Below, piece by piece: positions 27,442 to 55,601 of a stretch of 64,000 bases of DNA. Under the pieces are notes generated by a model that worked only from the letters and a program-made list of their open reading frames with translations, made no database searches and was not told the origin of the DNA. The position numbers and the translations under genes are program-made. The stretch is taken from the sequence record KJ019086.1; one strand, given 5' to 3'. The stretch's first letter is position 1; the number at the start of each line of letters is the position of its first letter.

Positions 27442-27500
27442 TGTGACAGTCGACAAACTGGCACAGGGGGGTTGGCAAACCCCCTTTTTTGTGCTATAAT
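27442..27500 (+). promoter_or_regulatory. Element 1
   Basis: TGTGACA-N10-TGGCACA; TTGGCA in G/C hairpin + T6; N17; TATAAT. Confidence 0.85.
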
Positions 27501-27533
27501 AACAGGGTAGTCAAACAGAGAGGTTAGGTTCTA

Positions 27534-27884
27534 GTGGGTTTCCTGAAGTCTCTGTTTGCTACTGCCTTGGTGGGTATTGTTGGTGTGGTGTCTCCCGCCG
27601 AGGCAAGTGTGGGTGGTAATATGTCCCCAGTCGTAGAGGGTATGTGTATAAAGTACACACCCTTTGGCAATCTGCCATGTAAGATTAGAGTAGATGATAG
27701 TAAAGAATTAGTGTATATTACAGACGGATATAACACTATGACATATACCAAGCACCCATTCATACCATATGCGTGGACAATGTATGTGAATGAACAACGG
27801 ATATCTAATATGTTATGCTCCCTAGATAAGTATAACTTCTCTTGTTTCACCTCAATCCAATTTGTTCCTGATTATGAAAACTAA
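27534..27884 (+). CDS. Hypothetical secreted protein
   Basis: Signal peptide ending PAEA; first gene after element 1. Confidence 0.6.
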   Translation: MGFLKSLFATALVGIVGVVSPAEASVGGNMSPVVEGMCIKYTPFGNLPCKIRVDDSKELVYITDGYNTMTYTKHPFIPYAWTMYVNEQRISNMLCSLDKYNFSCFTSIQFVPDYEN

Positions 27885-28206
27885 ATCATTGATGCTCACC
27901 AGTTTGATGGTGGCAACGATAACCGCATCACCTGTCATGGCGTACGGATATCGCCAACCATACTATCAACAACCCCCAGTTGTTATTCAACAGCCAGCAC
28001 CTGTTATCATTCAACAACCAAGACCCAGTACCCTAGAAACTGTTTTGGGTATTGCAGTTATTGGTGCAGGTTTATACTGGAATAGTCCAGCATATCAGAA
28101 CGATCATGGATATTATAATGGAAATAGAAACCATCATCACAACCAATACCAAGGTGGCAAAACATATGTAATTTGTAATGATTACGGACGGAGGTATTAC
28201 TGCTGA
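27874..28206 (+). CDS. Hypothetical secreted/membrane protein, Q/P-rich
   Basis: ATG 27874; signal peptide ending VMA, PVVIQQP repeats. Confidence 0.6.
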   Translation: MKTKSLMLTSLMVATITASPVMAYGYRQPYYQQPPVVIQQPAPVIIQQPRPSTLETVLGIAVIGAGLYWNSPAYQNDHGYYNGNRNHHHNQYQGGKTYVICNDYGRRYYC

Positions 28207-28415
28207 TGGATTTTGTGGCATTTATGATTGATAAGGAAAACGCCTTATCACTGATACAATCACTTCACGAATCTGCCGATAAGTGTAGTAAAGATGGAAG
28301 ACGAATTATGGAAGCAAACTATACCAAACTAGCAGACATGATGATGGAACAATACCTAGTATCAGAGAGTATCCACAGGAAGAGAAAAAGAAATAACGGA
28401 GATTATATCGGCTAA
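28206..28415 (+). CDS. Hypothetical protein
   Basis: Translationally coupled 69-aa ORF. Confidence 0.55.
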   Translation: MDFVAFMIDKENALSLIQSLHESADKCSKDGRRIMEANYTKLADMMMEQYLVSESIHRKRKRNNGDYIG

Positions 28416-28987
28416 TGATTGACTATCTTACCATCCCTAATAGCTTATCAGACAAACTTTGTGACGACATCATTCATAAGTTTGACAGTGATGATAGAGT
28501 TGATTATGGTAAAATTAATATGGGAGATGTTGATACTGAGGTCAAAAGATGTAAAGAGTTGTTCATATCAATCCTAGATAACTGGCGAGATCTTGACAAT
28601 CAGGTATTCAATGCGTCGGTGAAGGGGTTAAGTCAATACCGTGAGTACATTAATGAGTTATACGATGCCGATTATCTTCTAGGATCAGATAATTCTGATC
28701 AAGGTTACCGGGTAAAGAGATACGATATTGGTGAAGATTACTTTCATTGGCATCATGATCTACGCATAGATGAAAACCGTAGGATGAGATCAGTTGCCTT
28801 CATATGGTATCTAAATGATGTGGAAGAGGGTGGTGAAACAGAATTTAGTAATGGTCTAAAGATACGTCCAGAGAAAGGTAAACTACTTCTATTTCCATCT
28901 ACATGGAACAACGTACACAGAGGGAATACACCAATAAGTAATACGAAGTATGCTATTACTAGTTTCCTCTATTCCTCCTACGATTAG
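28415..28987 (+). CDS. 2OG-Fe(II) oxygenase
   Basis: WHHD, FIWYLNDVEEGGETEF, HRG...KY. Confidence 0.9.
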   Translation: MIDYLTIPNSLSDKLCDDIIHKFDSDDRVDYGKINMGDVDTEVKRCKELFISILDNWRDLDNQVFNASVKGLSQYREYINELYDADYLLGSDNSDQGYRVKRYDIGEDYFHWHHDLRIDENRRMRSVAFIWYLNDVEEGGETEFSNGLKIRPEKGKLLLFPSTWNNVHRGNTPISNTKYAITSFLYSSYD

Positions 28988-29016
28988 GTGATATATACTA
29001 AGTATGGGATACTTCA

Positions 29017-29571
29017 GTGGCAAAGGGTTATCGAATCAGGGGAGACTTTATTGCAAGTCTCATTAAACAACACGACTGTAAGATTGGTTATGAAATTGGG
29101 GTATCCAATGGTGCAACTTTTGGTAAGATCTTAAAGAAATGTGATAATATTGAGTGGCATGGTGTAGATCCATGGGTTGTATGTCCCGAGTATGATAAAC
29201 GCCCCAATGGTAAGGGTAAGTGGAATCATGATAGTAACTATGAGAAAGTTCAGGAGATTGTTAGTAAGTATCCAAAGCGTGCATATACCCACCGCATGAC
29301 CTCTGTAGAGGCTGCAAAGGAGGTAGAGGATAGAAGTATTGATATTATCTTTATAGACGGTCTGCACACCTACGAGGGGGTGAAGGAAGATCTAGAGGCT
29401 TGGGTGCCAAAGATCAAAATAGGTGGTATAATCTCTGGACATGACTATAAAGGTATGAAGAGACATGAGGGTGTGACTATACGAGTGAATGAAGTATTTG
29501 GTGAAGAAAACATTACTACTGGTCCAGATGTGACCTGGTGGTTATACAAAACGGAGGAACACGATGACTGA
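29017..29571 (+). CDS. Class I SAM methyltransferase (Methyltransf_24-like)
   Basis: YEIGVSNG, GVDPW, DIIFIDGLHTYEGVKEDLEAW, GGIISGHDY. Confidence 0.88.
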   Translation: MAKGYRIRGDFIASLIKQHDCKIGYEIGVSNGATFGKILKKCDNIEWHGVDPWVVCPEYDKRPNGKGKWNHDSNYEKVQEIVSKYPKRAYTHRMTSVEAAKEVEDRSIDIIFIDGLHTYEGVKEDLEAWVPKIKIGGIISGHDYKGMKRHEGVTIRVNEVFGEENITTGPDVTWWLYKTEEHDD

Positions 29572-30325
29572 GGGTTATGTTGTTATTGCACTTGGCGATA
29601 AGTATGTTCAACTCGCCAAGAACTTTGAAGATACACTAAGACAAAACGGTGACAATCGTCCTGTTCATGTTGTCACTGAAGACATGATTGATAAGGATAA
29701 TGATAAGTATAGGGACTGTGATGTTCCCAACGAAAGGTATAACTGCTACCCCAAACTTCACTTCAATGAGTATGCGATATTTGATCATAGTATCCTAATC
29801 GATGCCGATGTTCTGTGCGTAGGTGATACCCAACACGTTTGGGATATGTGTAAAGAACAGGAACAGTTTATTCTTCACCGTGGGTGGGGACAAGTTACTA
29901 AATGGAATAGAGAACTACAGAAGAAAGTGTGGGACGTTCATGGGTTCGTACCTCCTCGCATTCACGGAGCTTTCTGTTATCTAAGGAAGGCAGATATCAA
30001 TGAAGACTTCTTTGAATTTATCCAAAATAATGTGTGGTTTCAGTATACTGAATGGTGTACGGAAGATGTCAAAGCAAGACATCACAGGTTAAGTAGATCA
30101 GACCAGGTGATATATGCTATTGGTTATGGTAAGTTTGATCTCATGCCCTGTCAGTTAATGGAAGTCCCTATTATGACTCATATATTGACAGCGGCACACG
30201 TTAATCCTCCATACGATAGAATCACTTTTAAGGATCAAATTGGACCCGATTTACAACATCCAGTGGCATTTGCCCATATCGAACAACTATTTCAGGAGAG
30301 CACCCCAGAAAGTTTTCTAAGGTGA
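29564..30325 (+). CDS. GT-A fold (GT8-like) glycosyltransferase
   Basis: YPKL...ILIDADVL (DxD), SDQ motif; stop codon lies in element 2. Confidence 0.65.
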   Translation: MTEGYVVIALGDKYVQLAKNFEDTLRQNGDNRPVHVVTEDMIDKDNDKYRDCDVPNERYNCYPKLHFNEYAIFDHSILIDADVLCVGDTQHVWDMCKEQEQFILHRGWGQVTKWNRELQKKVWDVHGFVPPRIHGAFCYLRKADINEDFFEFIQNNVWFQYTEWCTEDVKARHHRLSRSDQVIYAIGYGKFDLMPCQLMEVPIMTHILTAAHVNPPYDRITFKDQIGPDLQHPVAFAHIEQLFQESTPESFLR

Positions 30326-30379
30326 CAGTCCACAAACTGGCACACAGGGCTTGGCAACCCTCCAAAAAGGTGCTATACT
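30321..30379 (+). promoter_or_regulatory. Element 2
   Basis: GGTGACA-N10-TGGCACA; TTGGCA-N17-TATACT. Confidence 0.85.
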
Positions 30380-30405
30380 ATCCAAGTAACCAAAGGAAAT
30401 GATTT

Positions 30406-30627
30406 ATGAAACCAGCAGAAATTCTCTACGAAATGCAATCCATTCGTAAAGTCTGGCATAATAATAATTTCGTCATCAGTCCCGAACTAAACCGTCGCTA
30501 TTGTGAACTTCTTAAACTCCGCCGTGAACGAGTTTCTCAATTCTATAAAGAGGGAAGGGTCGCTACAGGATCACAGACCCCCGACCTCAAAGCCCGAGAG
30601 GCAGCCAGACAAGCCGAGGTTGGTTGA
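30406..30627 (+). CDS. Hypothetical protein
   Basis: First ORF after element 2; LLKLRRERV motif. Confidence 0.65.
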   Translation: MKPAEILYEMQSIRKVWHNNNFVISPELNRRYCELLKLRRERVSQFYKEGRVATGSQTPDLKAREAARQAEVG

Positions 30628-31238: not shown

Positions 31239-31436
31239 ATGACTACTGACCCAAACGATAAGTACGCTAAGTTCAAAGTACCATTTGGCACTAATGAACA
31301 TCACGAAGATGATGAATGGGATCCTACAACTGAGGGTAAAATCTCTGATTGGCACAACCGACATCAAGATAAACTCTTAGATGAGTTTTGTGACACTCAC
31401 CCAGGCGCACCCCAATGTAAGGTGTTTGACGATTAG
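31239..31436 (+). CDS. CP12-like protein (Calvin-cycle inhibitor family C-terminus)
   Basis: C-terminal LLDEFCDTHPGAPQCKVFDD matches the CP12 FC-x3-P-x4-C-x-V[YF]DD motif; N-terminus divergent. Confidence 0.6.
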   Translation: MTTDPNDKYAKFKVPFGTNEHHEDDEWDPTTEGKISDWHNRHQDKLLDEFCDTHPGAPQCKVFDD

Positions 31437-31484
31437 CAAAGTGGCACAAGACCACTTGACAGTACCACATTATTAGGTTACAGT
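31425..31484 (+). promoter_or_regulatory. Element 3 (degenerate left arm)
   Basis: TTTGACG-N10-TGGCACA; TTGACA-N17-TACAGT. Confidence 0.65.
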
Positions 31485-31488
31485 ACAT

Positions 31489-31677
31489 TTGTTCAAGAGG
31501 TTTCTCATGACTACCGTTGTTGACTCAGAGGTTATCTTTGCTGACGCTTTCAGTGAAGATGGTATAGACTACGGAACTGGTTATTATGTAACTAAGTTCT
31601 ATAGCAATGGTATGACCGACCTATTTGGACCATACAATTTTGAGGAAGACGCCCTCAATCTTGCCACTGTTTATTGA
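31489..31677 (+). CDS. Hypothetical protein
   Basis: ORF after element 3; exact start uncertain. Confidence 0.45.
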   Translation: MFKRFLMTTVVDSEVIFADAFSEDGIDYGTGYYVTKFYSNGMTDLFGPYNFEEDALNLATVY

Positions 31678-31894: not shown

Positions 31895-32182
31895 GTGGAT
31901 TTCAGGGTAACAGTAAGAACACACACCGGGGCAGTTAGAGTTGTCGAGGTGAGCAACATGCCGAACGAGGAGGCAGCCAGAGCGGAAGCTGTTGGTATGA
32001 CTTTCGGTAGGGTTCTGCAGGTTGAGTGTTTAGATGAGATCCCAGAACAATCCAAACCTAAAAAGAAAAGAGGACCAGTTCAAGAGATTGAACGAGAACT
32101 TAGACCAGGTGAAACCGAAACAATTGTAACAGGTTACAATAGCAACCCGTTAGCAGTGTTCTTCACTTTAGATGTTTTTTAG
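31895..32182 (+). CDS. Hypothetical protein
   Basis: GTG start after GAGG RBS and CTAAATA at 31863. Confidence 0.55.
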   Translation: MDFRVTVRTHTGAVRVVEVSNMPNEEAARAEAVGMTFGRVLQVECLDEIPEQSKPKKKRGPVQEIERELRPGETETIVTGYNSNPLAVFFTLDVF

Positions 32183-32214
32183 GGGTTGACACACCCCTTT
32201 TTTTGTGCTATACT
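32181..32214 (+). promoter_or_regulatory. Element 4 (hairpin-promoter only, palindrome absent)
   Basis: AGGGGT-TGACAC-ACCCCT-T-run containing TTGACA; N17; TATACT. Confidence 0.75.
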
Positions 32215-32235
32215 TATACCAATCGCAGGAGATCA

Positions 32236-32502
32236 ATGGAAGAAAACATGTCGATTTCGACAGAACTTCTAACCAGCATAAACGACGCCATGTATGTTGC
32301 CACTAACAACGCAGCTACTTACATGCACGGTGATAGAGGTGCTGACGCTATGTGTCTCCTAAACGAGTGGACTACAGAGGATGGTGAATGTTTACTCACA
32401 CAATATGCAAAGGGTGAAGTATGTGAGCACATGGGAACTTTCATGTTTATCAACCTAGAAGAAGAAACATGGGGTGAGTTTATTATATCCGATGATGAGT
32501 AA
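32236..32502 (+). CDS. Hypothetical acidic protein
   Basis: ATG after AGGAG. Confidence 0.6.
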   Translation: MEENMSISTELLTSINDAMYVATNNAATYMHGDRGADAMCLLNEWTTEDGECLLTQYAKGEVCEHMGTFMFINLEEETWGEFIISDDE

Positions 32503-32749
32503 ACTATATACTACAGACAATTATTCAGGTACAATGAACCTAACTGAACATCAAAAGATTCAACTCTCACAATTTATTCATGAGTCGTTCTCTACATTCT
32601 ATGAGGAGGAACTAAAGTTTCAAGTAGAAACTCTAAAAGATGATGATAAGTTGGATTGGACTTATACAATCACACCAAGAGACTCAGGGGAGATTTATGA
32701 TAAGGTTCAGGAATTATTCACACTGGAAAGGCGTGTGACAGTAGAATAA
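32492..32749 (+). CDS. Hypothetical protein
   Basis: Stop lies in element 5. Confidence 0.55.
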   Translation: MMSKLYTTDNYSGTMNLTEHQKIQLSQFIHESFSTFYEEELKFQVETLKDDDKLDWTYTITPRDSGEIYDKVQELFTLERRVTVE

Positions 32750-32793
32750 GTGACACAAGGGGGGTTGGCAAACCCCCTTTTTGCTGCCATAAT
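32734..32793 (+). promoter_or_regulatory. Element 5
   Basis: TGTGACA-N10-TGACACA; TTGGCA hairpin + T-run; N17; CATAAT. Confidence 0.85.
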
Positions 32794-32815
32794 ATACTCA
32801 TACACACAAAGACCC

Positions 32816-32944
32816 ATGAACGTCCCCAACTGGCAGAAGCACTCCAAGAAAGACCAGAAGGGTCGCGGAGTGAGCAAGGGTCAGATGAGAGCCCGCAAAC
32901 AGGCTCTACGTGCCCTGAAGGCAAAGCTCCTTGTGACAGTCTAG
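32816..32944 (+). CDS. Small basic protein (42 aa)
   Basis: MNVPNWQKHSKKDQKGRGVSKGQMRARKQALRALKAKLLVTV; start moved out of the element. Confidence 0.65.
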   Translation: MNVPNWQKHSKKDQKGRGVSKGQMRARKQALRALKAKLLVTV

Positions 32945-32991
32945 GAAGTGGCACAAGCCCCCTAGGCAAGACCCCCAAACCCTGCTATACT
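32932..32991 (+). promoter_or_regulatory. Element 6
   Basis: TGTGACA-N10-TGGCACA; TAGGCA-N17-TATACT. Confidence 0.85.
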
Positions 32992-33014
32992 AAACACATA
33001 CAAAGGAAACCACC

Positions 33015-33425
33015 ATGGCTCGTCACTCTGAAGTTCTCATCCAAGGCACCGAGGTTCCCGGTCTTCGCATGATCGTAACCGTTCCAGTCGATCACACCTG
33101 GGCATCAGAAACCGCCGAGAGCATCTATGGATTTGGTGGCAACACCCAATATATCTGGCGGAAGTCTTGGGAGACTAACCAACCCGCCCCCCGTGGTGGT
33201 GGTTCCTCCTCCTCCTCCTCTGGCATGGGTCCTGGAGCTATCCTGATGGGGATGATTGGTCTTATCCTGGTTGCTGGTATTGGTTCCGCCTTCGAGGGTA
33301 ACGACACCCCCTCAGCTCCTTCCTATGACGCTCCCGCACCTGTTGAGAGGTCATACGTTCCACAGGCACCCGCAGCCTCCTATGACAATGGCCCTTGTCT
33401 CACCGCTAACTTCGAACCTTGTTAA
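33015..33425 (+). CDS. Hypothetical membrane protein
   Basis: Central TM segment, Ser/Gly and Pro/Ala linkers. Confidence 0.65.
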   Translation: MARHSEVLIQGTEVPGLRMIVTVPVDHTWASETAESIYGFGGNTQYIWRKSWETNQPAPRGGGSSSSSSGMGPGAILMGMIGLILVAGIGSAFEGNDTPSAPSYDAPAPVERSYVPQAPAASYDNGPCLTANFEPC

Positions 33426-36114: not shown

Positions 36115-36519
36115 ATGAATAAGAACAAGCACAATGAGATTGTAGGATCTACAGTAGAAAGATCAGACGAGAGGATCAAAGACACTGGGGAGGTATTCAC
36201 TCCCCTAGAACTGTGTCGTGAGATGGTTAGTGAGATCCCCCTATCTACCCTGCAAGATCCTAACTCCACCTTTTTGGATAATTCTGCTGGCTGTGGCAAC
36301 TTCCTCATCGCCCTCAGGGACCGGCTATTGGAATATCATGAGTTATCACATATCGTAGACAATATGATCTACTGTGTGGAACTTATGGAGGACAACCATA
36401 GGGAAATATGTAAGACAATGGGTGTATCTACCGATCATCCACACTATGTGAGGGCAAATGCACTGGAATACGATTATAGCTTCGGCAACCCCGTTGGGTT
36501 GGAGAGTTTCTTCGTGTGA
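36115..36519 (+). CDS. Short N6-adenine DNA methyltransferase-like protein (SAM-binding half only)
   Basis: GEVFTP (motif X) and FLDNSAGCGNFL (motif I); no NPPY motif IV or TRD. Confidence 0.75.
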   Translation: MNKNKHNEIVGSTVERSDERIKDTGEVFTPLELCREMVSEIPLSTLQDPNSTFLDNSAGCGNFLIALRDRLLEYHELSHIVDNMIYCVELMEDNHREICKTMGVSTDHPHYVRANALEYDYSFGNPVGLESFFV

Positions 36520-36574
36520 CAGTTGAATAAGTGACACAAGGGGGGTAGGCACCCCCCTTTTTTTGTGCCATAAT
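36515..36574 (+). promoter_or_regulatory. Element 7
   Basis: TGTGACA-N10-TGACACA; TAGGCA hairpin + T7; N17; CATAAT. Confidence 0.85.
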
Positions 36575-36599
36575 ACAACCAAACAAACCCCATCAAGAC

Positions 36600-37136
36600 A
36601 TGTTCAGTTCAATCTTTTCTGATAATACACTACAGGATTATATCAACCAAAATATTAAAGATCCTTGGGTAGGCACACCTTTTGAGGGTTATGTGTTTAT
36701 GTCACCTAAACAAAAGGGTGAGTTTGGTGAGCGGTTTGTATCTAAGTTTATGACACTAGCTGGATGTAATGTTAAGAGAGCAAAGACATCTACATCAGGT
36801 CATGATCGTCTGATTGATGGTATCCTGACTGAGATTAAGTTTGGTGTTGCTATCCGCGATAAAAAAGATGGTGTTTGTGTTGATGGATTCATCATTAATC
36901 ACGTCTCCGTTGGTAAAGACTGGGAGCGTCTTATTTTCTGTGGCATTAACCCTGATGAGGATGATGTTCGTTTTGTTTTTATCACTAAGGAGGACTTTGA
37001 ATCACACCTCAAGAGTGATGACTGTTTATTCAATGTTCAGCAAGGTGGAAAGAAAGTCGGCAATGATGACTATATTTGCACCAAAGTATCAGAACTGTTG
37101 CAGACCAATATCGTTCGTCCGATTGATCAGTGGTGA
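36600..37136 (+). CDS. PD-(D/E)xK restriction-endonuclease-like protein
   Basis: KGEFGE, GHD, TEIKF pattern of type II REase cores. Confidence 0.6.
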   Translation: MFSSIFSDNTLQDYINQNIKDPWVGTPFEGYVFMSPKQKGEFGERFVSKFMTLAGCNVKRAKTSTSGHDRLIDGILTEIKFGVAIRDKKDGVCVDGFIINHVSVGKDWERLIFCGINPDEDDVRFVFITKEDFESHLKSDDCLFNVQQGGKKVGNDDYICTKVSELLQTNIVRPIDQW

Positions 37137-37196
37137 TGTTACACCTAAACAACTGGCACAAGGGGGGTAGGCACCCCCCTTTTTTTGTGCCATAAT
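37137..37196 (+). promoter_or_regulatory. Element 8
   Basis: TGTTACA-N10-TGGCACA; TAGGCA hairpin + T7; N17; CATAAT. Confidence 0.85.
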
Positions 37197-37222
37197 ACAG
37201 AGGTAAACAACGGGAACCACCC

Positions 37223-37600: not shown

Positions 37601-37645
37601 ACTGGCACAGGGGGGCTAGGCACAGCCCCCTACACCTGCTATACT
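37586..37645 (+). promoter_or_regulatory. Element 9
   Basis: TATGCCA-N10-TGGCACA; TAGGCA-N17-TATACT. Confidence 0.85.
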
Positions 37646-37667
37646 AAACACATACCAAACCAATACT

Positions 37668-46321: not shown

Positions 46322-46531
46322 ATGTCTTCACCATCAGCATTCACACCAGCATTAGGTCTAGAAGTTGAATACAGGGGCTTTGTGGGTTATATCAAGTTTA
46401 TAGATGAAGAATATTTAACAGTGTGTGTGAAGAAGAAAGAGCACCAAATGTTTGGTGATGTTTGTATGGTTGTGTATCCAAGTCAGTGGGAACACATTAA
46501 ACTAATGGGCGGACCTCACAGAGACCGCTAG
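46322..46531 (+). CDS. Hypothetical protein (SH3-like pattern)
   Basis: GLEVEY-GFVGYIKFI-EEYLTVC; stop is left arm of element 19. Confidence 0.6.
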   Translation: MSSPSAFTPALGLEVEYRGFVGYIKFIDEEYLTVCVKKKEHQMFGDVCMVVYPSQWEHIKLMGGPHRDR

Positions 46532-46588
46532 GACAGCTGAGGAAGTGGCACAAGGGGGCTAGGCAAGCCCCCTTTGTCGTGCTATACT
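46529..46588 (+). promoter_or_regulatory. Element 19
   Basis: TAGGACA-N10-TGGCACA; TAGGCA hairpin; N17; TATACT. Confidence 0.85.
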
Positions 46589-46615
46589 ATATTCATACCA
46601 AAGGGAACCACCCCC

Positions 46616-46762
46616 ATGACTATCAACTTTAAAAGTCTATTCATCACCACTTGTGTGGGTCTCACCCTAATACTAGGGAGCTTCGCTTTTACCAGTGATT
46701 ATGGTACTGAGACCGGGCGTGGCGAACAGACTGAGAGCCCTTACTACGGACCCGCTTTCTAA
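46616..46762 (+). CDS. Small secreted/membrane protein (48 aa)
   Basis: Start moved to ATG 46616; MTINFKSLFITTCVGLTLILGSFAFT. Confidence 0.55.
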   Translation: MTINFKSLFITTCVGLTLILGSFAFTSDYGTETGRGEQTESPYYGPAF

Positions 46763-46807
46763 AGTGGCACAAGGGGGGTTGGCAATACCCTCTACACCTG
46801 CTATACT
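46748..46807 (+). promoter_or_regulatory. Element 20 (left arm lost)
   Basis: TGGCACA at 46765; TTGGCA-N17-TATACT. Confidence 0.8.
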
Positions 46808-46830
46808 AAACACATACCAAACAAAGAACC

Positions 46831-47007
46831 ATGTTCAAACTTCAACTCAAGTGGCAGAAAGAAGGTGAGTGGATTGATACAGTATACGCTCCTACAGAAT
46901 ACGCAACAGCTTTCTTTCGTTGGAGACAGTACCAAGAGCTTTGGGGTGATACTCACACCTATCGCCTCCTCGATGTGACACCTCAGGAAGTGGCACAAGC
47001 CTCCTAG
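46831..47007 (+). CDS. Hypothetical protein (58 aa, not in ORF track)
   Basis: MFKLQLKWQKEGEWIDTVY...; reads through element 21 palindrome. Confidence 0.55.
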   Translation: MFKLQLKWQKEGEWIDTVYAPTEYATAFFRWRQYQELWGDTHTYRLLDVTPQEVAQAS

Positions 47008-47033
47008 GCAAACCACCCCACACCTGCTATACT
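46974..47033 (+). promoter_or_regulatory. Element 21
   Basis: TGTGACA-N10-TGGCACA; TAGGCA-N17-TATACT. Confidence 0.9.
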
Positions 47034-47056
47034 AAACACATACCAAACAAAGAACC

Positions 47057-47338
47057 ATGAATTTCAAGTCCTTCCTTCTTTCCTCACTCATCGTCACCAC
47101 CGGGCTAGTAGCCTCAGCACCAGGAGCCAAAGCCGCTGAATGTTTCATGGGTGATGGCTATCGGGTTTGTATGGAGAGCTTAGGCATGAATCGTTGGGAA
47201 GTATCCTTCGAGAACAACCATGGCTCAGAGTTTATGGAGGTTCAGTGTATTGGCAAGAGTGTGAGTGATTGGACATCACGAGGTGATTTGAGTCAGTCTG
47301 AGGCAAACTATCTCGCAGAACAGTTCTGTTCCTGGTAA
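47057..47338 (+). CDS. Secreted 4-Cys protein
   Basis: Signal peptide MNFKSFLL...APGAKA; similar to 50744-51061. Confidence 0.7.
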   Translation: MNFKSFLLSSLIVTTGLVASAPGAKAAECFMGDGYRVCMESLGMNRWEVSFENNHGSEFMEVQCIGKSVSDWTSRGDLSQSEANYLAEQFCSW

Positions 47339-47371: not shown

Positions 47372-47530
47372 ATGTTTGTATCCTTCACTGAAATCCAAGA
47401 CTACATTCGCGAAGACCAATACACATATAGTGAGCGTCAGTTCCGCTCACGCAAATACAACAAAAACGAACGTCGTTATCAGCGTCGTCAGAAGCAACAA
47501 CAAAGAGAACGCAACTACGATAGCGTGTGA
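47372..47530 (+). CDS. Small R/Q-rich protein (52 aa, not in ORF track)
   Basis: MFVSFTEIQDYIREDQY...RERNYDSV; stop in element 22. Confidence 0.55.
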   Translation: MFVSFTEIQDYIREDQYTYSERQFRSRKYNKNERRYQRRQKQQQRERNYDSV

Positions 47531-47584
47531 CAGTTGGAGAAGTGGCACACACTTCTCCACAAACCCCCCAGGGGGTGCTATACT
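47526..47584 (+). promoter_or_regulatory. Element 22 (non-consensus -35)
   Basis: TGTGACA-N10-TGGCACA; TCCACA-N17-TATACT. Confidence 0.8.
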
Positions 47585-47609
47585 ATATTCATACCAAAGG
47601 GAACCACCC

Positions 47610-47834
47610 ATGACCACCACCACTCCAAACCTCTACAACGAAGCTATCCGTCGTTTGGCTGACGGTTTCTCCTCAGAGTTCGCTGAGTTCTGTGCAGGAG
47701 ACGAGAGGGTTCATGAGATCATGATGGACCTCGCTAGTGAGTTTGTAGAAACCAATATCCCTGTAGTGAGTGAGGAGAGCCAAACCGATGTGGCATCTGA
47801 GCTCCTCATGAGTATCACAGTCACCAAGGTGTGA
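47610..47834 (+). CDS. Hypothetical acidic protein
   Basis: Start moved to ATG 47610; stop in element 23. Confidence 0.65.
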   Translation: MTTTTPNLYNEAIRRLADGFSSEFAEFCAGDERVHEIMMDLASEFVETNIPVVSEESQTDVASELLMSITVTKV

Positions 47835-47889
47835 CAGTCTAGGAACTGGCACAAGGGGGGTTGGCAACACCCCCCAAAACCTCTATACT
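47830..47889 (+). promoter_or_regulatory. Element 23
   Basis: TGTGACA-N10-TGGCACA; TTGGCA hairpin; N17; TATACT. Confidence 0.9.
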
Positions 47890-47914
47890 AAACACATACC
47901 AAACAACCCAGACC

Positions 47915-48463
47915 ATGAACTTCAAGAAACTCCTCCTTTCCACTCTCGCACTTGGTTCAGTTGTAGCCCCTTCAGCAAACGCTGGTTATACCTATGAGGG
48001 TTATCACTTGATGGATGGTTCTGACTTTCCTGGTTATGAGAGAGTGGCAACCCCAATGATTCAGGCTCTCAATGAAATGGGTGTTCCTGTTGTTGATGGT
48101 GGTAAGAATAACGTAGAAATGTGTATTCCTGAAGAGGAAAAGATGACTCTTGGTTTCTACGTTCCAGCATCCAATGTGATGGTTATCTGTACCAAGTCTA
48201 TCCCAGGTTGGCTTCAGATGGAGACACTTACCCACGAAACAGTTCATGTCATCCAAGACGCACGGGCTGGTATTGATAACGGAGATTTGGGAGAGGCACC
48301 AACCGATCACCTTATCACCCTCGCTAATGAGATGGATCCCGATAAGATGAATATCATCTACAGCCTCTACGATGAGTCTGATTACGCAGTAGAGATTGAA
48401 GCTTTCTACTTTGAAACAGAACCCCAGGTGGTTATGAATGAGATCCAACGTTGGGCATTCTGA
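47915..48463 (+). CDS. Secreted HExxH zinc metallopeptidase-like protein
   Basis: Start moved to ATG 47915; signal peptide ending SANA; THETVHVIQ and downstream EIEA glutamate. Confidence 0.65.
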   Translation: MNFKKLLLSTLALGSVVAPSANAGYTYEGYHLMDGSDFPGYERVATPMIQALNEMGVPVVDGGKNNVEMCIPEEEKMTLGFYVPASNVMVICTKSIPGWLQMETLTHETVHVIQDARAGIDNGDLGEAPTDHLITLANEMDPDKMNIIYSLYDESDYAVEIEAFYFETEPQVVMNEIQRWAF

Positions 48464-49381: not shown

Positions 49382-49440
49382 TGTGACAGTTGGATTAGTG
49401 GCACACGAAAGCCCGCAAACCCCTCAGGGGGTGCTATACT
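49382..49440 (+). promoter_or_regulatory. Element 24 (non-consensus -35)
   Basis: TGTGACA-N10-TGGCACA; CCCGCA-N17-TATACT. Confidence 0.85.
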
Positions 49441-49462
49441 AAACCCATACACAACAAAACCA

Positions 49463-49819
49463 ATGATCTACTCTATCACTCACCAGGAGACTGGCATTAC
49501 GTATTCAGTTAGCACTGAAGATATTCGTAAAGTTGCTAACATCCTCCCAATGAACTCTGAGGAGTTGGCTGACATGATGACAGGTCTGAATTGTGACTCA
49601 TATGCAGATATGGCAGAAGAGTATATTGAAGAAGTTGCGGATATGTATGATGATGTGACACTGGCAACTGATAAGTTTATGAGTAGCACTGATGAAAGGG
49701 CACAAACAACGTTCGCCTACTATCGTATCATGAACTGTGATAACTCTGATGAAGTGACTACACAATATTGGCGTGATGACGCTATGGCTATGATCACTGA
49801 CTACAATGATCGCAAATGA
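49463..49819 (+). CDS. Hypothetical acidic protein
   Basis: First ORF after element 24. Confidence 0.6.
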   Translation: MIYSITHQETGITYSVSTEDIRKVANILPMNSEELADMMTGLNCDSYADMAEEYIEEVADMYDDVTLATDKFMSSTDERAQTTFAYYRIMNCDNSDEVTTQYWRDDAMAMITDYNDRK

Positions 49820-50127
49820 AACGCTACGGACTTTATTGGCTGAGAGCTATCACCCTAGGTGCTGGTCTAAACTTTGTTCTGACTGGTTATCTCATGGGTC
49901 ACCAAAAGTGGAAGTTTCAACATGCAGCTCCACTCTCAGCGTTTATCTGCGTGAATCTATCGTATGTGGCGGATCGTCTTATCTTTGGCGATAAGAAGGA
50001 ACCTGAAGATTTAGATCCAGATACTATTGTTATATCAACCCCACATTGTTGCCCCGTATGTTCAGAGTATCCTTGCACTTGTGACAGTTGGGAAAGTGGC
50101 ACAACCCCCCTAGGCAACACCCTCTGA
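49816..50127 (+). CDS. Hypothetical membrane protein with C-terminal Cys cluster
   Basis: Two hydrophobic segments; CCPVC..CTC; reads into element 25. Confidence 0.5.
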   Translation: MKRYGLYWLRAITLGAGLNFVLTGYLMGHQKWKFQHAAPLSAFICVNLSYVADRLIFGDKKEPEDLDPDTIVISTPHCCPVCSEYPCTCDSWESGTTPLGNTL

Positions 50128-50139
50128 ACCTGCTATACT
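50080..50139 (+). promoter_or_regulatory. Element 25
   Basis: TGTGACA-N10-TGGCACA; TAGGCA-N17-TATACT. Confidence 0.9.
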
Positions 50140-50163
50140 AAACACATACCAAAGGAACCAACC

Positions 50164-50361
50164 ATGAAAGTCTCTCAGGAAGTTTTCAAGAGTTACATTC
50201 AGATACTGGATGAAAACACACAAACATCATGGGATATCCTAAATGTTTTGAATGATATTGTTAGAGGTGACTGGGATAACTCAGTCCAGTATTGTTTGGA
50301 AAATCCATCAGGCGACCCTATGGATGATTTCAACTACGCAGGCAGTCGCCACCACTATTGA
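50164..50361 (+). CDS. Hypothetical protein
   Basis: Ends DDFNYAGSRHHY. Confidence 0.65.
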   Translation: MKVSQEVFKSYIQILDENTQTSWDILNVLNDIVRGDWDNSVQYCLENPSGDPMDDFNYAGSRHHY

Positions 50362-50390: not shown

Positions 50391-50675
50391 ATGACACGCA
50401 CTCCAATGACAGTCACCCTCAAGCGTAGCGACTGGGAATGTTATACAGACACCCCCGATACTATCATCGAAACTATCAACTCATACTTCTCTTATGTGTT
50501 ATCAACTAAAGATAACGCGTTTGATGCACAGTCTGAGATATTCAAGTTTCTGAATATGTTTAGTGAGTTTGGGTTTATGGATAGTGAGTGCCTAGAATGT
50601 GCAACTAGAGTCATCAACAGATATTTCGATTCATACCTCTCCCGCTGGAGTCAGGTGGGTGATGTGACAGTCTAG
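50391..50675 (+). CDS. Hypothetical protein
   Basis: Ends DVTV-stop inside element 26. Confidence 0.65.
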   Translation: MTRTPMTVTLKRSDWECYTDTPDTIIETINSYFSYVLSTKDNAFDAQSEIFKFLNMFSEFGFMDSECLECATRVINRYFDSYLSRWSQVGDVTV

Positions 50676-50721
50676 GAAGTGGCACACGCTTTCCCGCAAA
50701 CCCCTCAGGGGGTGCTATACT
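50663..50721 (+). promoter_or_regulatory. Element 26 (non-consensus -35)
   Basis: TGTGACA-N10-TGGCACA; CCCGCA-N17-TATACT. Confidence 0.85.
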
Positions 50722-50743
50722 ATATTCATACCAAAGGAACCAA

Positions 50744-51061
50744 ATGAATTTCAGAACACTAGCACTCACCACCACCCTGGCTCTCTCCACTGTCCTAGGT
50801 GGTTTGGCTCCTGAAGCTAAGTCAGCTGACTTTTGTGACAACATCCCCGGCAACTCGGGATACGTTTGTGTTACCATGGGTCTCTGGTTCGACTTGGTTG
50901 AGGCAGACATACCCGCCTTTGGTGGTAAAGAGTCATTACACATCACCTGTGACAATGGCTGGTCATATCGATCTAATGGTAACTGGAACAAAGACGCCGC
51001 TTCCCTTGTGGCTAAGGAATACTGTGAAGGTGCTGGCTGGAACAGCCACTCCGAGGTGTGA
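50744..51061 (+). CDS. Secreted 4-Cys protein
   Basis: Signal peptide MNFRTLAL...APEAKS; similar to 47057-47338; stop in element 27. Confidence 0.7.
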   Translation: MNFRTLALTTTLALSTVLGGLAPEAKSADFCDNIPGNSGYVCVTMGLWFDLVEADIPAFGGKESLHITCDNGWSYRSNGNWNKDAASLVAKEYCEGAGWNSHSEV

Positions 51062-51116
51062 CAGTCTAGGAAGTGGCACAAGCCCCCTAGGCAAGACCCC
51101 TCGGGTCTGCTATACT
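51057..51116 (+). promoter_or_regulatory. Element 27
   Basis: TGTGACA-N10-TGGCACA; TAGGCA-N17-TATACT. Confidence 0.9.
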
Positions 51117-51140
51117 ATATTCATACCAAACAAAGAAACC

Positions 51141-51407
51141 ATGTTTCCACACCTCCACATCTCTGAATCCAACCTCGGACCTCACACCTCCACGTTTTTC
51201 AAAGTATCATCACAACCACAAGATGAGTGGCAGAATGGCATTTTCCATAACTCACCTTATGGTATCTTTCACCTTCATTCTGAGAAAGGTGTTTATAAGT
51301 TGGAACTATCTTCCTCAGGTTTGAATACACCTAAGTTCAGGAAGTGTAAGTGTGAAGATGAACTTACCGCACTCACTAAGATTCGTCAGTGGATGGATAA
51401 GTTCTGA
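51141..51407 (+). CDS. Hypothetical protein
   Basis: Start moved to ATG 51141; WQNGIFHNSPY motif. Confidence 0.65.
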   Translation: MFPHLHISESNLGPHTSTFFKVSSQPQDEWQNGIFHNSPYGIFHLHSEKGVYKLELSSSGLNTPKFRKCKCEDELTALTKIRQWMDKF

Positions 51408-51442: not shown

Positions 51443-51616
51443 ATGAACCGACTAGAACTACTGACCCAACGTGAACAACTGATGGAGAGGATTGACTCTA
51501 TCTGTGATGAATTCTTTTATAAGAACTATAATGGAGATACATCAGAAGCAGATGAATTAGTTCGTATTCTATGTGATGCTGTTTGTGAAACCATAGACCC
51601 AGCGGGCATGGTGTGA
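51443..51616 (+). CDS. Small acidic protein (57 aa, not in ORF track)
   Basis: MNRLELLTQREQLMEEIDSI...LCDAVCETID; stop in element 28. Confidence 0.6.
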   Translation: MNRLELLTQREQLMERIDSICDEFFYKNYNGDTSEADELVRILCDAVCETIDPAGMV

Positions 51617-51671
51617 CAGTTGGAGAAGTGGCACAAGCCCCCTAGGCAAACCCCTCCATACCTGCTATACT
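51612..51671 (+). promoter_or_regulatory. Element 28
   Basis: Identical to element 29 over 61 bp. Confidence 0.9.
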
Positions 51672-51696
51672 ATATTCATACCAAAGGAAACCGACC

Positions 51697-51960
51697 ATGT
51701 TCCAAGTCTGTACCGAAGACGCTCTAGATCACCGCTACACAATTGATGAGTTTGAGACACTGGAAGAAGCCCAATCTTGTTATAACGAGTGTGTGAAGGT
51801 TGGAGCTGAGGGTTATGAGATTTCGGTTGAGTTAGAGGAAATCATTGGCGATCATGATGATTACGTTTCCATCGAGTTCACCGAGTGGTTTACACAAGAG
51901 AGTTGGGAGGAAGCACATCCATGGAATGATAAGGAAGGAGTTTGGGAGAACGTTGACTGA
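51697..51960 (+). CDS. Very acidic hypothetical protein
   Basis: 87 aa between identical elements 28 and 29. Confidence 0.65.
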   Translation: MFQVCTEDALDHRYTIDEFETLEEAQSCYNECVKVGAEGYEISVELEEIIGDHDDYVSIEFTEWFTQESWEEAHPWNDKEGVWENVD

Positions 51961-51961
51961 C

Positions 51962-52021
51962 TGTGACAGTTGGAGAAGTGGCACAAGCCCCCTAGGCAAA
52001 CCCCTCCATACCTGCTATACT
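51962..52021 (+). promoter_or_regulatory. Element 29
   Basis: TGTGACA-N10-TGGCACA; TAGGCA-N17-TATACT. Confidence 0.9.
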
Positions 52022-52048
52022 AAACACATACCAAACAAAGGAAACCAC

Positions 52049-52390
52049 ATGACCACCACCCAAACCAAAACCGAGTTCCTCACCGAGGCAATGATCGAAC
52101 AGGTGAACAACCTCTGGAAGGTTTATAACGTGGAGTCAGGTCACACCATCACCCCACTTCTTAAGTATGAAGTGGCTAAGAAGTACATCAAGGTCTATCG
52201 TTTAGACGTTGTGAATGGTGAGATTCGTGACGGTCGTTCAGTGTTTATGTTTATCGATAAGGAGACTGGTGCAGTTCTGAAACCAGCCTCATGGAGAGCA
52301 CCCGCTAAGGGTATCCGGTTCTACATTGAACAGTTGGCTGAGTCTCCTGAGCTCGTGGATCAGTATGGTAGTTTCCTCTACCGTCGCTGA
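52049..52390 (+). CDS. Conserved-looking phage hypothetical protein
   Basis: Start moved to ATG 52049; KKYIKV...FIDKETGAVLKPASWRAPAKGIR. Confidence 0.75.
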   Translation: MTTTQTKTEFLTEAMIEQVNNLWKVYNVESGHTITPLLKYEVAKKYIKVYRLDVVNGEIRDGRSVFMFIDKETGAVLKPASWRAPAKGIRFYIEQLAESPELVDQYGSFLYRR

Positions 52391-52450
52391 TGTGACAGCC
52401 ACCAAAGTGGCACAGGGGGGCTAGGCAGCTCCCCTTCTTTATGCTATACT
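52391..52450 (+). promoter_or_regulatory. Element 30
   Basis: TGTGACA-N10-TGGCACA; TAGGCA hairpin; N17; TATACT. Confidence 0.9.
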
Positions 52451-52472
52451 ATATTCATACCAAAGGAACCAG

Positions 52473-53726
52473 ATGGCTCTCACTCTCCGCCCCCACCAAC
52501 TAGAAGCACTTCAGGTGATGGCTGAGACTCGTCTTGGTCAGATATTAGTTCCGACTGGTGGCGGCAAGACTCTTATCGCTATCATGGACGTTGTGAGGAC
52601 TCTAGAGAACGCAGGAACCCCTCAGACTATCGTTGTGGTGGCACCTAGGATATTGTTAGCCCAGCAACTCTGTAGTGAGTATATGGAGGTTCTGAGTGAT
52701 AGGTTCGCCAACGTTATCCCCGCCCATATTCACTCAGGTCACACACCTCACTTCAGCACCACTAACATTCAGAAGATCCATCTTTTTGAGAAGATGATGG
52801 ATACCGCCAACCTCCACCGCATATACTTCACCACATACAACTCACTTCCACGTTTAGCAGAAGCAGGTGTGAGTGTCGATACTATTATGTTTGATGAGGC
52901 ACATAACTCGACTCGTAATGACTTCTATCCCGCTACCAAGTATTTCTCACAGACCGCTAGTCGTTGTTATTTCTTTACAGCAACTCCCCGTCACTCGGTA
53001 ACATCCAAGAGACACGGAATGAACGAGTCTGATGTATATGGTCAGGTCATCTACAATGTTCCTGCCCCTACACTTGTTCAGGGTGGGTTTATCATCCCCC
53101 CACAGGTTCGTGTTAAAGAGATGGAGTTTGTAGCTAAACATGAGCTCATCTCACAACGTGATACAAACCACCTCATCTCTTGTATTGATGACAACCACAC
53201 GAGCAAAGTTCTAGTTTGTGCTAAGTCAGTCAAACAGATCATGCGTATGTTTAGTGAGACCGATATCAGCCAACAACTTGATGATCGTGGTTTCTCCTAT
53301 ATGTACATCTCAGCTAAGACTGGTGGTGTTATCAATGGCAAGAAAGTATCACGTACTATGTTCTTCGATACTCTAAATGAGTGGGGTAAGGATAACAACA
53401 AGAAGTTTATTGTTCTTCATCATTCTATTCTCTCTGAGGGTATCAATGTAAGTGGTCTAGAGTCAGCTATCTTCTTACGTACTATGGATCACATTACTAT
53501 CAGTCAAACGATTGGTCGTGTGATTCGACTTCACAAGGATGATGCTAAAGCTATGAGAGATGGTTCGATTCGCCCCGGTGATCTTAACTCCTATACTAAG
53601 TCCTTTGGTTTGTGTATTGTTCCAGTTTATTCTAAAACACAACAAACAGTTGCCAAGTCTCTTCAGGCAGTTGTTAATACCGTCTTTGTGGAAGGTGAAG
53701 CAGCAACCACAGTTGTGAGGCGTTAG
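52473..53726 (+). CDS. Superfamily 2 DEAH-box helicase (ResIII-like)
   Basis: LRPHQ, VPTGGGKT (Walker A), FDEAH, FTATP, LSEGINV, QTIGRVIR. Confidence 0.9.
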   Translation: MALTLRPHQLEALQVMAETRLGQILVPTGGGKTLIAIMDVVRTLENAGTPQTIVVVAPRILLAQQLCSEYMEVLSDRFANVIPAHIHSGHTPHFSTTNIQKIHLFEKMMDTANLHRIYFTTYNSLPRLAEAGVSVDTIMFDEAHNSTRNDFYPATKYFSQTASRCYFFTATPRHSVTSKRHGMNESDVYGQVIYNVPAPTLVQGGFIIPPQVRVKEMEFVAKHELISQRDTNHLISCIDDNHTSKVLVCAKSVKQIMRMFSETDISQQLDDRGFSYMYISAKTGGVINGKKVSRTMFFDTLNEWGKDNNKKFIVLHHSILSEGINVSGLESAIFLRTMDHITISQTIGRVIRLHKDDAKAMRDGSIRPGDLNSYTKSFGLCIVPVYSKTQQTVAKSLQAVVNTVFVEGEAATTVVRR

Positions 53727-54545: not shown

Positions 54546-54660
54546 GGAAGATACTCTCTATTCTGGTTGTATATATAAACATTATCTTTTTTTATCACAT
54601 GTGCCTGTTTATCTCCCTTATGAATGTTATAATAGGAAAGGAGAGAAAGAGATGAATAAG

Positions 54661-54951
54661 CAATGGAATCACCTAGGTAAGAGTTATCTAATAGAAGGAA
54701 CTAAACAATACATCAACCAATGGAATCACCTAAGAGAAGGTATCACTAATCCCCTATAGAAAGACCCAATAGAATGTAATCTAATCCATTGTAATCACCT
54801 ATAGGATAGTATCATATAACGAGGTCTTTACATCTCACTAAGCTCCTCCTAAACTCCACTGCCCGTTGCATATAAAGATCCATAGAAAGGTCTCTGCCCA
54901 CTGAGCCTAAACCTCTCTGCCCGTTGCAACCTAAGCCCGTTATAACACGGG
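54661..54951. repeat. Cluster of short direct repeats in AT-rich intergenic DNA
   Basis: CAATGGAATCACCTA at 54661 and 54718 (degenerate at 54787); CTGCCCGTTGCA at 54859 and 54917. Confidence 0.7.
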
Positions 54952-55002
54952 ACTTCGGAAATGTCAAGGGATCTCCGAAAAACTTAATATTTCCGAGACA
55001 CC

Positions 55003-55062
55003 CCAGACACCCACGGAACTGGCACAAACCCCCTTGGCAAACCCCCCGAAATGGCATATACT
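55003..55062 (+). promoter_or_regulatory. Element 31 (degenerate left arm)
   Basis: CCAGACA-N10-TGGCACA; TTGGCA-N17-TATACT. Confidence 0.8.
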
Positions 55063-55087
55063 ATATTCATACACAAGGGAACCACCC

Positions 55088-55321
55088 ATGGAATTCATCC
55101 AAACTGACTACCCCGCTAACATGGCTCCCAATGTTATGGAGAGGAACTATGGTCGGGGTATCATCCTGACTCAGGTTAATGAGGATGGTGTCATTCCATT
55201 CTCAGTATTCAATTTCAAAAAAGAGGATTGGAACTGGGGAGCTGACTACTACATGACCGAGCATAACTTTTATACACTAGAGGAGGCAGAGGCGGTAGTG
55301 ACTCAGCTCGTAGCCAGCTGA
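55088..55321 (+). CDS. Hypothetical protein
   Basis: Start moved to ATG 55088; stop in element 32. Confidence 0.6.
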   Translation: MEFIQTDYPANMAPNVMERNYGRGIILTQVNEDGVIPFSVFNFKKEDWNWGADYYMTEHNFYTLEEAEAVVTQLVAS

Positions 55322-55369
55322 ACCACTGGCACATGGGGGCTAGGCACAGCCCCCTCTATACCCTATACT
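55310..55369 (+). promoter_or_regulatory. Element 32
   Basis: GTAGCCA-N10-TGGCACA; TAGGCA hairpin; N17; TATACT. Confidence 0.85.
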
Positions 55370-55395
55370 ATATTCATACCAAAGGGAACCACCCC

Positions 55396-55554
55396 ATGAC
55401 CAAAGCAACTCAGAGACCTTCCACCCAGAGCCGTTACACCAGTCAGGTAGCCATGGATCGTAAGGCAGCAGCACTCCAGAGGGCTGAGGAGCGTCGCCTC
55501 ACGGGTTCTGCCGACGTGGATCAGGTGAACCGCCTCTACACTGTGACACTCTGA
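55396..55554 (+). CDS. Small hypothetical protein (52 aa)
   Basis: Start moved to ATG 55396; stop in element 33. Confidence 0.55.
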   Translation: MTKATQRPSTQSRYTSQVAMDRKAAALQRAEERRLTGSADVDQVNRLYTVTL

Positions 55555-55601
55555 TAACCGGCGCACAGGGGGTTGACAATACACCCCCATGGCTCTATAC
55601 T
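55542..55601 (+). promoter_or_regulatory. Element 33 (degenerate right arm)
   Basis: TGTGACA-N12-GCGCACA; TTGACA hairpin; N17; TATACT. Confidence 0.75.

Follow-up and report, generated by a model that had tools for sequence, protein, structure and literature searches.

The 64,000-nucleotide stretch of DNA analysed here (the window) has the coordinates of the first 64 kb of the 227-kb genome of Synechococcus phage ACG-2014f isolate Syn7803US17 (KJ019086.1; Kyanoviridae, Atlauavirus), to which it is 100% identical. It carries 32 copies of a cassette of about 85 bp in which a 24-bp palindrome stands at a fixed place before a predicted promoter. We propose, with a probability of roughly 0.6, that the palindrome is the operator of a dimeric protein, likely an activator, and that the cassettes double as recombination patches. 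Since many unrelated contigs of marine phages also carry the palindrome, it is probably the docking site of a transcription regulator.

The cassettes lie in a region bounded by tail-fibre genes, which end at 27434, and the baseplate gene gp25 (59308). About 85 small genes, mostly unannotated and nearly all on the plus strand, fill this region, and phage Syn9 has a region of small open reading frames (ORFs) at the syntenic place. A search for exact matches to TGTGMCA-N10-TGDCACA found 22 distinct sites, which all lie in 27442-52391, while 0.02 are expected by chance from shuffled sequences. When mismatches were allowed in the palindrome and a downstream promoter was required, 32 cassettes were called from 27442 to 55542, every one on the plus strand: 22 without a mismatch, 3 with one, 3 with two, 2 with three, and 2 (40668 and 46748) with the right arm alone. 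An initial annotation of this DNA had counted 33 copies, one more than we could confirm, and had correctly placed all of them on the plus strand.

Each cassette consists of the palindrome TGTGACA-N10-TGGCACA, 6-7 bp, a -35-like hexamer, 17 bp, TGnTATACT, a CA-rich leader and ATG; a typical copy reads TGTGACAGTTGGAGAAGTGGCACA, agccccc, TAGGCA, 17 bp with a final TGc, TATACT, atattcataccaaaggaacc, ATG. The left arm starts 54 bp before the start of the -10 hexamer in 25 copies and 53 bp before it in 7, or 59-60 bp before its end, as had been read at first. The spacer between -35 and -10 is 17 bp, and the -10 has the form TAnnnT, in 32/32 copies. The mean match to the -35 is 4.25/6, TGn precedes the -10 in 24/32, and the annotated start codon falls 80-87 nt from the start of the left arm in 27/32. 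The scans thus reproduce the consensus, the gap, the spacer, the mostly TG-extended -10 and the C/A-rich leader to ATG that the initial annotation described.

Extending the scan to the full genome, as had been suggested, added three copies outside the region, upstream of cobS (114666), of a hypothetical gene (157925) and of psbA (172672). Hence 32/35 copies lie in the 28-kb small-ORF region, and none in the 227-kb genome faces the opposite way. The idea that the element organises the whole region proved overstated, since just 31/81 starts of coding sequences (CDS), counted in the region and just beyond, carry a cassette. Three promoters of the region, upstream of the CDS at 32236, 34193 and 38972, have no palindrome, and two of the three have a classical hairpin and T-run in its place.

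The right, promoter-proximal arm is more conserved than the left, and four copies combine an intact right arm with a decayed left one; the claim that the arms are conserved thus holds for the right arm and less so for the left. N10, taken at first to vary freely, is semi-conserved at positions 8-10 and 15-17 (S-T-Y ... A-A-S). In 18/28 cases the upstream ORF ends within the palindrome: 7 of these ORFs use the TGA of TGTGAca as stop codon and 11 a TAG, TGA or TAA in N10. In 7 further cases the stop codon is no more than 10 bp 5' of the palindrome, which is thus at an ORF 3' end in 25/28. Only in the ACG-2014f lineage do the arms show the A/G asymmetry, the general consensus being a perfect TGTGCCA...TGGCACA, and A is probably preferred in the left arm of this lineage because TGA serves as a stop codon. 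Some palindromes, for example TGTGACAGTTGAATAAGTGGCACA (42863-42886), hold stops in three frames (TGA at 3-5, TGA at 10-12, TAA at 14-16) and would therefore terminate any upstream ORF.

Downstream of the palindrome, G-type spacers form a hairpin, aGGGGGG-T(T/A)GGCA-CCCCCC, with the -35 in the loop, and about 6-7 of the copies also have a T-run; C-type spacers do not pair. About 13 copies have a G-rich/C-rich hairpin enclosing the -35. The leader types ATATTC... and AAACAC... are found with the G and C spacer types in all four combinations, and the cassette copies therefore recombine with one another.

Two scans of IMG/VR, reported here for the sites among the matches listed, followed the palindrome beyond this phage. 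The first required exact arms and matched at least 120 stretches, with 157 sites among the matches listed; 62 of these 157 exact palindromes have a -10 hexamer at offset 53/54, against 1-2 for each other offset. In the second, arm positions 5 and 20 were free and TATAAT was required 29-30 bp downstream; again at least 120 stretches matched, and the loci, of 32-52% GC, hold at least 161 unique sites. The consensus among the matches listed is TGTGCCAgTTnnnnAAgTGGCACA, N29 (117) or N30 (39) in the 156 sites with full flanks, TATAAT and an A/C-rich leader; the palindrome itself can also be written TGTGCCAgTT-N4-AAgTGGCACA. Among the listed contigs the intervening 29-30 bp, the -35, the flanks and the genes are not conserved. 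The -35 of this wider family matches at a mean of 3.07/6 in the 156 listed sites, versus 2.38 in shuffled spacers, and TGn occurs in 23/156. One multi-copy contig is a fragment of a T4-like cyanophage next to gp25/gp6; for another, no relative was found among sequenced phages. Because it is conserved across contigs, the palindrome element appears to be an old, selected feature, of which ACG-2014f shows an extreme amplification.

The initial annotation had also linked the element to the early-gene motif reported for Syn9. The sequence gives no support to this equation: in the first 100 kb of Syn9, syntenic region included, there are just two copies, each belonging to a particular subclass with perfect arms. 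Copies 38407 and 39575 of the window, rightly called perfect palindromes since their arms are fully complementary, belong to this subclass, which is conserved between ACG-2014f and Syn9 (NC_008296, 48558 and 52996); its -10 is weak (TATCTT, TATTGT or TATTCT), and ATAGGAGTGG(a/g)AG stands between this -10 and a long CA-rich leader. GGAGTGG leaders like those of the subclass occur in IMG/VR contigs L034, L043, L061 and L119. Tandem arrays of 2-6 palindromes, each then followed by TTGACA, with a 58-bp period, were seen at L070:770-2340 (3300031784_003461) and in L064 (3300008113_001711). They lie upstream of small minus-strand genes on an AT-rich contig and resemble an operator array, with no regulator gene nearby. 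In the literature that we read, neither the palindrome nor a cyanophage with cassettes like the promoter early stem-loops (PeSLs) is described, though Weigele 2007 or Doron 2016 may contain an earlier account.

Lying where the upstream ORF ends, the palindrome could instead act as an RNA or single-stranded DNA hairpin that ends, stabilises or processes the upstream message, and so be equivalent to the stem-loop that PeSLs carry at this position. The 24-mers fold at -8.1 kcal/mol, versus -2.1 kcal/mol when shuffled, and a perfect copy reaches about -12 kcal/mol. Covariation, however, is absent in the 32 window copies (score 0.028 versus 0.040 shuffled), the pairs 5-20 and 8-17 are mostly unpaired, and an A.G mismatch sits in mid-stem in 21/27 distinct window copies. 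Among the listed IMG/VR sites, positions 5/20 vary independently (C/G 85, A/G 36, C/T 24, A/T 16; p = 0.31), and positions 8/17 are enriched in combinations that cannot pair (GG 73 and CC 27 versus GC 14 and CG 18; p = 7e-7), which holds when each locus is counted once. No T-run follows the palindrome, and some copies have a separate G/C hairpin as terminator. Rfam gave no match in the 64-kb window at the gathering score. Across unrelated contigs it is the letters and not mere pairing that are kept, and the -10 follows at a distance that varies by no more than 1 bp, a constraint for which an element of the upstream mRNA would have no need. We therefore regard the hairpin as improbable: letters that are kept without compensatory change, together with the fixed spacing, are in keeping with a protein that recognises the DNA as a duplex and has a set position with respect to RNA polymerase. 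The earlier suggestion of a dimeric protein at a fixed site is upheld as regards a two-fold-symmetric site at about -66 to -43 and its spacing, but the symmetry of a homodimer is not borne out at positions 8/17. By the preference at these positions the site is intrinsically asymmetric, and it is found in either orientation with respect to the promoter, at about 3:1; the GG/CC class has no link with N29 or N30 spacing in the listed IMG/VR sites.

The role of the cassettes in gene exchange was examined by comparing 27.0-59.5 kb with the same region in the sister strains C8, US26, C16 and C9. A breakpoint was scored as lying on a cassette when it was no more than 10 bp away; with this margin the cassettes make up 12% of 27.4-55.7 kb. 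In this interval 26 of the 38 unique insertion/deletion (indel) or replacement breakpoints from the four strains fall on cassettes, versus 4.5 expected, and none of 10,000 permutations reached 26. Homology between strains mostly stops at the start codon and restarts at the left border of the palindrome that follows, which makes whole ORFs the exchanged units. Cassettes themselves are gained, lost and converted: that at 42863 is a cassette-only indel, and the cassette variant before ORF 41352 in the window differs from that of C8. The recombination scaffold proposed at the outset is thus well supported, and the cassettes mark sites of gene swapping between strains.

The restart of homology at the palindrome would also be expected if cassettes were moved by a site-specific recombinase or nuclease for which the palindrome is the target, like an attC or homing site, with the promoter link secondary. 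Both cassette-only indels and indels of a cassette with its ORF occur, the conserved mismatched positions recall structure-specific sites, and genes for HNH and NUMOD-type endonucleases lie in or beside the region. Yet neither an integrase nor a recombinase is annotated in the 227-kb genome, the spacing to the -10, fixed to 1 bp across the listed contigs, is left unexplained, and the reassortment of sub-modules in all combinations suggests that homologous exchange takes place over the full length of the cassette and not at one point. We consider such a target unlikely, more so than the hairpin. Least likely of all, and already contradicted, on sequence comparison, by the cross-contig conservation, is a functionless palindrome that hitch-hikes in a recently amplified promoter repeat homogenised by gene conversion: within the genome the whole cassette, with its presumably neutral spacer, is conserved and copies are converted, but other contigs keep the palindrome, spacing and -10 alone while spacer, leader and genes differ, and the right arm stays intact where the left arm decays.

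If the palindrome is an operator, its binding protein may be encoded by the host or by the phage. We scanned 185,579 species genomes (GTDB species representatives) for the palindrome followed by N29/30 and TATAMT. In the N29/30 layout, the only one searched, the composite of palindrome and -10 is absent from marine Synechococcus and Prochlorococcus chromosomes among these representatives. The scan matched 39 stretches, of which the cyanophage-like ones are on contigs resembling phage DNA binned into metagenome-assembled genomes (MAGs) or assemblies. Several units with cyanophage-type leaders occur on contigs labelled Nonlabens xiamenensis (L124/L158; NZ_RMVE01000006.1, 188 kb), Synechococcus MAG (L122/L155; JBJBBP010000001.1, 194 kb) and Flavobacteriales TMED113 (L127/L135/L157), and likewise on L131, L132, L140 and L149; the bacterial-labelled contigs with such units are probably cyanophage DNA that was mis-binned or co-assembled.

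Among 30 ORFs of the region, Pfam scans found no helix-turn-helix regulator. The only gene with a DNA-binding fold found near the cassettes encodes a 54-residue AbrB/MazE-like protein (56478-56642), whose Pfam match (E = 1e-4) is below the cut-off. Its structural model has a predicted local distance difference test score of 91, and the top PDB fold matches are MazE, AbrB-N, SpoVT and VapB, with probabilities of 0.94-1.0. The gene lies about 2-2.7 kb upstream of gp25 in 40/42 gp25-anchored loci irrespective of motif count (it is gp92 in Syn9), and in none of 76 homologues is there a palindrome within 100 nt upstream, the nearest being 240 nt away. On its modelled fold, this protein is a weak candidate for the palindrome binder. 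Upstream of the gene is a 470-bp non-coding gap (56008-56477) with AT-rich stretches and the repeats cgacag(g)tccccc (three times) and ttcccag (about five times), possibly an origin, non-coding RNA or other control region. Outside the window, at 140330-141022 of KJ019086.1 (L252:26330-27022), is the gene for a 230-residue sigma-70-family protein (region 2, E = 4e-13; region 4, E = 5e-7), additional to the T4-type late sigma gp55. No connection between this protein and a TATAAT-type -10 was seen.

In the mechanism that we propose from the sequence, each cassette would be a portable unit that drives expression of a single small gene or of a short operon. The core of the unit would be a sigma-70-type promoter for the host RNA polymerase (TAGGCA/TTGGCA, 17 bp, TGnTATACT), with a predicted start about 7 nt after the -10 and a CA-rich leader of about 18-20 nt that carries an AAGGA-type ribosome site. 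A dimeric protein would read the 24-bp two-fold-symmetric operator at about -66 to -43 as duplex DNA and touch RNA polymerase as an activator, switching the gene set together. The near-constant spacing from the -10 (within 1 bp) and the poor -35 hexamers of the wider family lead us to favour an activator in contact with RNA polymerase; a co-ordinating repressor is less likely. In this phage the palindrome also closes the upstream gene by the stop codons in its left arm or N10, and in about a third of the copies a G6...C6 hairpin around the -35, sometimes with a T-run, would stop read-through. Via the cassettes, genes and cassettes alike would be exchanged, deleted, inserted and converted between co-infecting relatives; the cassettes are suited to be homology patches because about 85 bp are near-identical before 32 genes.

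Several observations weigh against this proposal. A simple symmetric homodimer does not predict the same-base preference at positions 8/17, and a centre near -54 is non-canonical for class I and class II activators. The window copies have a decent -35 and TGn and therefore may work without an activator; judged by these elements, they could fire unaided. With no chromosomal composite among the GTDB representatives, nothing points to a host regulon built in the same way, and the AbrB-like gene, being near-universal and having no palindrome nearby, neither discriminates nor shows autoregulation. As for recombination, conserved repeats and gene junctions in general attract breakpoints and alignment ends; taking gene junctions as the null, of which 38% (31/81) have a cassette versus 68% (26/38) of breakpoints, makes the excess weaker, though still clear.

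In S-PM2 and Syn9, 'early' was inferred from promoter type and small-ORF context (review, PMC2984593), and by analogy the cassette genes may be early as well. With their poor -35 and rare TGn, the promoters of the wider family look factor-dependent rather than constitutive early. A more specific version, which we put forward tentatively and hold to be possible rather than probable, is that the palindrome is the operator of an undescribed phage-encoded or virion-delivered factor that in many marine and freshwater T4-like cyanophages replaces the -35 and switches delayed-early or 'middle' genes. T4-like cyanophages are without Alt/Mod, MotA and AsiA, and the mechanism of their early and middle transcription has been called unclear (PMC2984593). 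If this version is true, the genes switched in ACG-2014f would include psbA and cobS, and the operator with its factor would be a functional counterpart of MotA/AsiA, the operator having been amplified to a 32-copy mobile cassette family in this phage. A sequence-specific operator tied to the -10 would give a handle on the timing of pre-replicative genes, with a regulon readable from genomes, and the 24-mer could be used to fish out the binding factor.

The coordinates of the cassettes and related features are collected in Table 1. A cassette-bounded slot at 36115-36519 of the window holds a fragment-like N6-methylase ORF and a 178-residue ORF; the same slot has a DNA methyltransferase and a helicase in C9 (L166:9876-13244) and two large ORFs of unassigned function in C16. 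The only minus-strand gene of the region (53835-54545) is annotated as 'cox1-i7 protein' and has a weak NUMOD1 match, and an HNH endonuclease gene (57979-58407, plus strand; E = 5e-13) lies in or beside the shuffled region. Both are of the free-standing homing-endonuclease type, and further HNH insertions differ among strains.

Table 1. Positions of the cassettes, of promoters that have no palindrome and of the AbrB-like gene in the window.
Feature	Position	Strand	Remarks
Cassette 1, palindrome to start codon	27442..27536	+	G-type spacer hairpin and T-run overlapping -35; -10 TATAAT
Cassette	30321..30408	+	left arm with 1 mismatch
Degenerate cassette	31425..31509	+	2 mismatches; TTGACA-17-TACAGT
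Promoter without palindrome	32160..32238	+	TTGACA in hairpin loop, T-run, TGcTATACT; classical PeSL-like
Cassette	32734..32818	+	terminator-like hairpin around -35
Cassette	32932..33017	+	C-type spacer
Cassette	36515..36602	+	hairpin and T-run; strain breakpoint
Cassette	37137..37225	+	hairpin and T-run; strain breakpoint
Cassette	37586..37670	+	1 mismatch
Perfect-arm subclass copy	38407..38529	+	-10 TATCTT, ATAGGAGTGG, long CA-rich leader; also in Syn9
Promoter without palindrome	38885..38974	+	GGAGGG...CCCTCC hairpin, T-run, TTGCCA-17-TATAAT
Perfect-arm subclass copy	39575..39683	+	TGTGCCA...TGGCACA, -10 TATTGT, long leader
Cassette	40352..40439	+	left-arm TGA is stop codon of upstream ORF
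Cassette	40668..40759	+	right arm alone intact
Cassette	41011..41093	+	borders ORF replaced in strains C8 and US26
Cassette	41268..41354	+	same ORF preceded by different cassette variant in C8
Cassette, itself the indel	42863..42949	+	missing in C8 and US26, where genes overlap as ATGA
Cassette	43186..43270	+	
Cassette	44334..44420	+	
Cassette	46529..46618	+	2 mismatches; left-arm TAG is upstream stop codon
Cassette	46748..46833	+	right arm alone intact
Cassette	46974..47059	+	
Cassette	47526..47612	+	
Cassette	47830..47917	+	
Cassette	49382..49465	+	cassette and its ORF absent in C8 and US26
Cassette	50080..50166	+	
Cassette	50663..50746	+	strain breakpoint at ATG
Cassette	51057..51143	+	strain breakpoint
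Cassette	51612..51699	+	strain breakpoints at both edges
Cassette	51962..52051	+	strain breakpoint
Cassette upstream of helicase gene	52391..52475	+	hairpin-type spacer
Cassette	55003..55090	+	left arm degenerate
Cassette	55310..55398	+	left arm degenerate
Last cassette	55542..55628	+	TTGACA-17-TATACT
Gene of 54-residue AbrB/MazE/SpoVT-fold protein	56478..56642	+	weak candidate for palindrome-binding factor

The element can be set beside several known systems. Sigma-54 promoters have TGGCAC at -24, TTGC at -12, a start about 12 nt downstream and no -10 TATAAT, and cyanobacteria are not known to have sigma-54. Here no TTGC is found 4-5 nt past TGGCACA, and TATAAT/TATACT is conserved 29-30 nt downstream, so this promoter class was rejected. 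Sites of the CRP/FNR family read TGTGA-N6-TCACA, or GTA-N8-TAC for NtcA, measure 16-22 bp and are centred at -41.5, at -61.5 or a further helical turn away. They share with the palindrome the outer TGTG...CACA, the two-fold symmetry and a fixed position at the promoter, but the half-site is longer here, TGTGCCA(S)TT, 14 bp instead of 6 separate the pentamers, and the centre would be at -54.5/-53.5 if transcription starts 7 nt after the -10. The initial annotation was thus right in calling the half-sites CRP-like with N14 instead of N6, and the site is not of the CRP type. Integron attC cassettes likewise have an imperfect palindrome at ORF 3' ends, together with an integrase of the tyrosine-recombinase type; this identity was also discarded, as the site is phase-locked to the promoter and the annotation of KJ019086.1 contains no integrase.

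The MtlR operator of B. subtilis, TTGTCACA-GTCA-TGTGCCAA (PMC3217849), has the letters of its half-sites, TGTGNCA / TGNCACA, in common with the palindrome and lies directly against the -35 of a promoter that depends on an activator. Its half-sites, however, are everted with a 4-bp gap, and the PRD-type regulator and the organism are unrelated, so that this is a resemblance only.

T4 middle promoters combine a MotA box, (a/t)(a/t)(a/t)TGCTTtA at -30, with a sigma-70 -10. The wider family resembles them in its good -10, poor -35, extra element at a fixed distance and block of pre-replicative genes, and differs in having a 24-bp palindrome at -66 to -43 instead of a 9-bp box at -30. A MotA/AsiA middle promoter proper was rejected: the spacer consensus contains no such box, and cyanomyoviruses are without motA and asiA (PMC2984593).

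The PeSLs of RB49/phi1, T4/PST and KVP40/nt-1 are cassettes at shuffling boundaries (Arbiol et al. 2010, PMC2839356; Comeau et al. 2014, PMC4122927), and the analogy with them drawn at the outset is apt, three of four testable PeSL features being present and the stem-loop in part. As in those phages, there are many near-identical co-oriented units with a sigma-70-type promoter and N17 spacer, they cluster in the hyperplastic small-ORF region of a T4-like genome, they lie at indel or replacement boundaries of close relatives, and in some copies a terminator hairpin is joined to the promoter. The host here is cyanobacterial, however, and S-PM2, the only cyanophage checked for PeSLs in the literature that we read, was said to be without a dense PeSL set (PMC4503421). 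PeSLs carry a structure-only stem-loop, whereas the 24-bp palindrome is sequence-specific, has no G/C stem or T-run and is common to very different contigs at a fixed distance from the -10; furthermore, the hairpin encloses the -35 here and precedes the promoter in PeSLs. The cassettes would thus carry the idea of PeSLs over from phages of enterobacteria and vibrios to those of cyanobacteria. The ACG-2014f population, with 45 sequenced strains from one host, would be an unusually clean natural experiment on promoter cassettes as shuffling joints in a virus that is abundant in the ocean.

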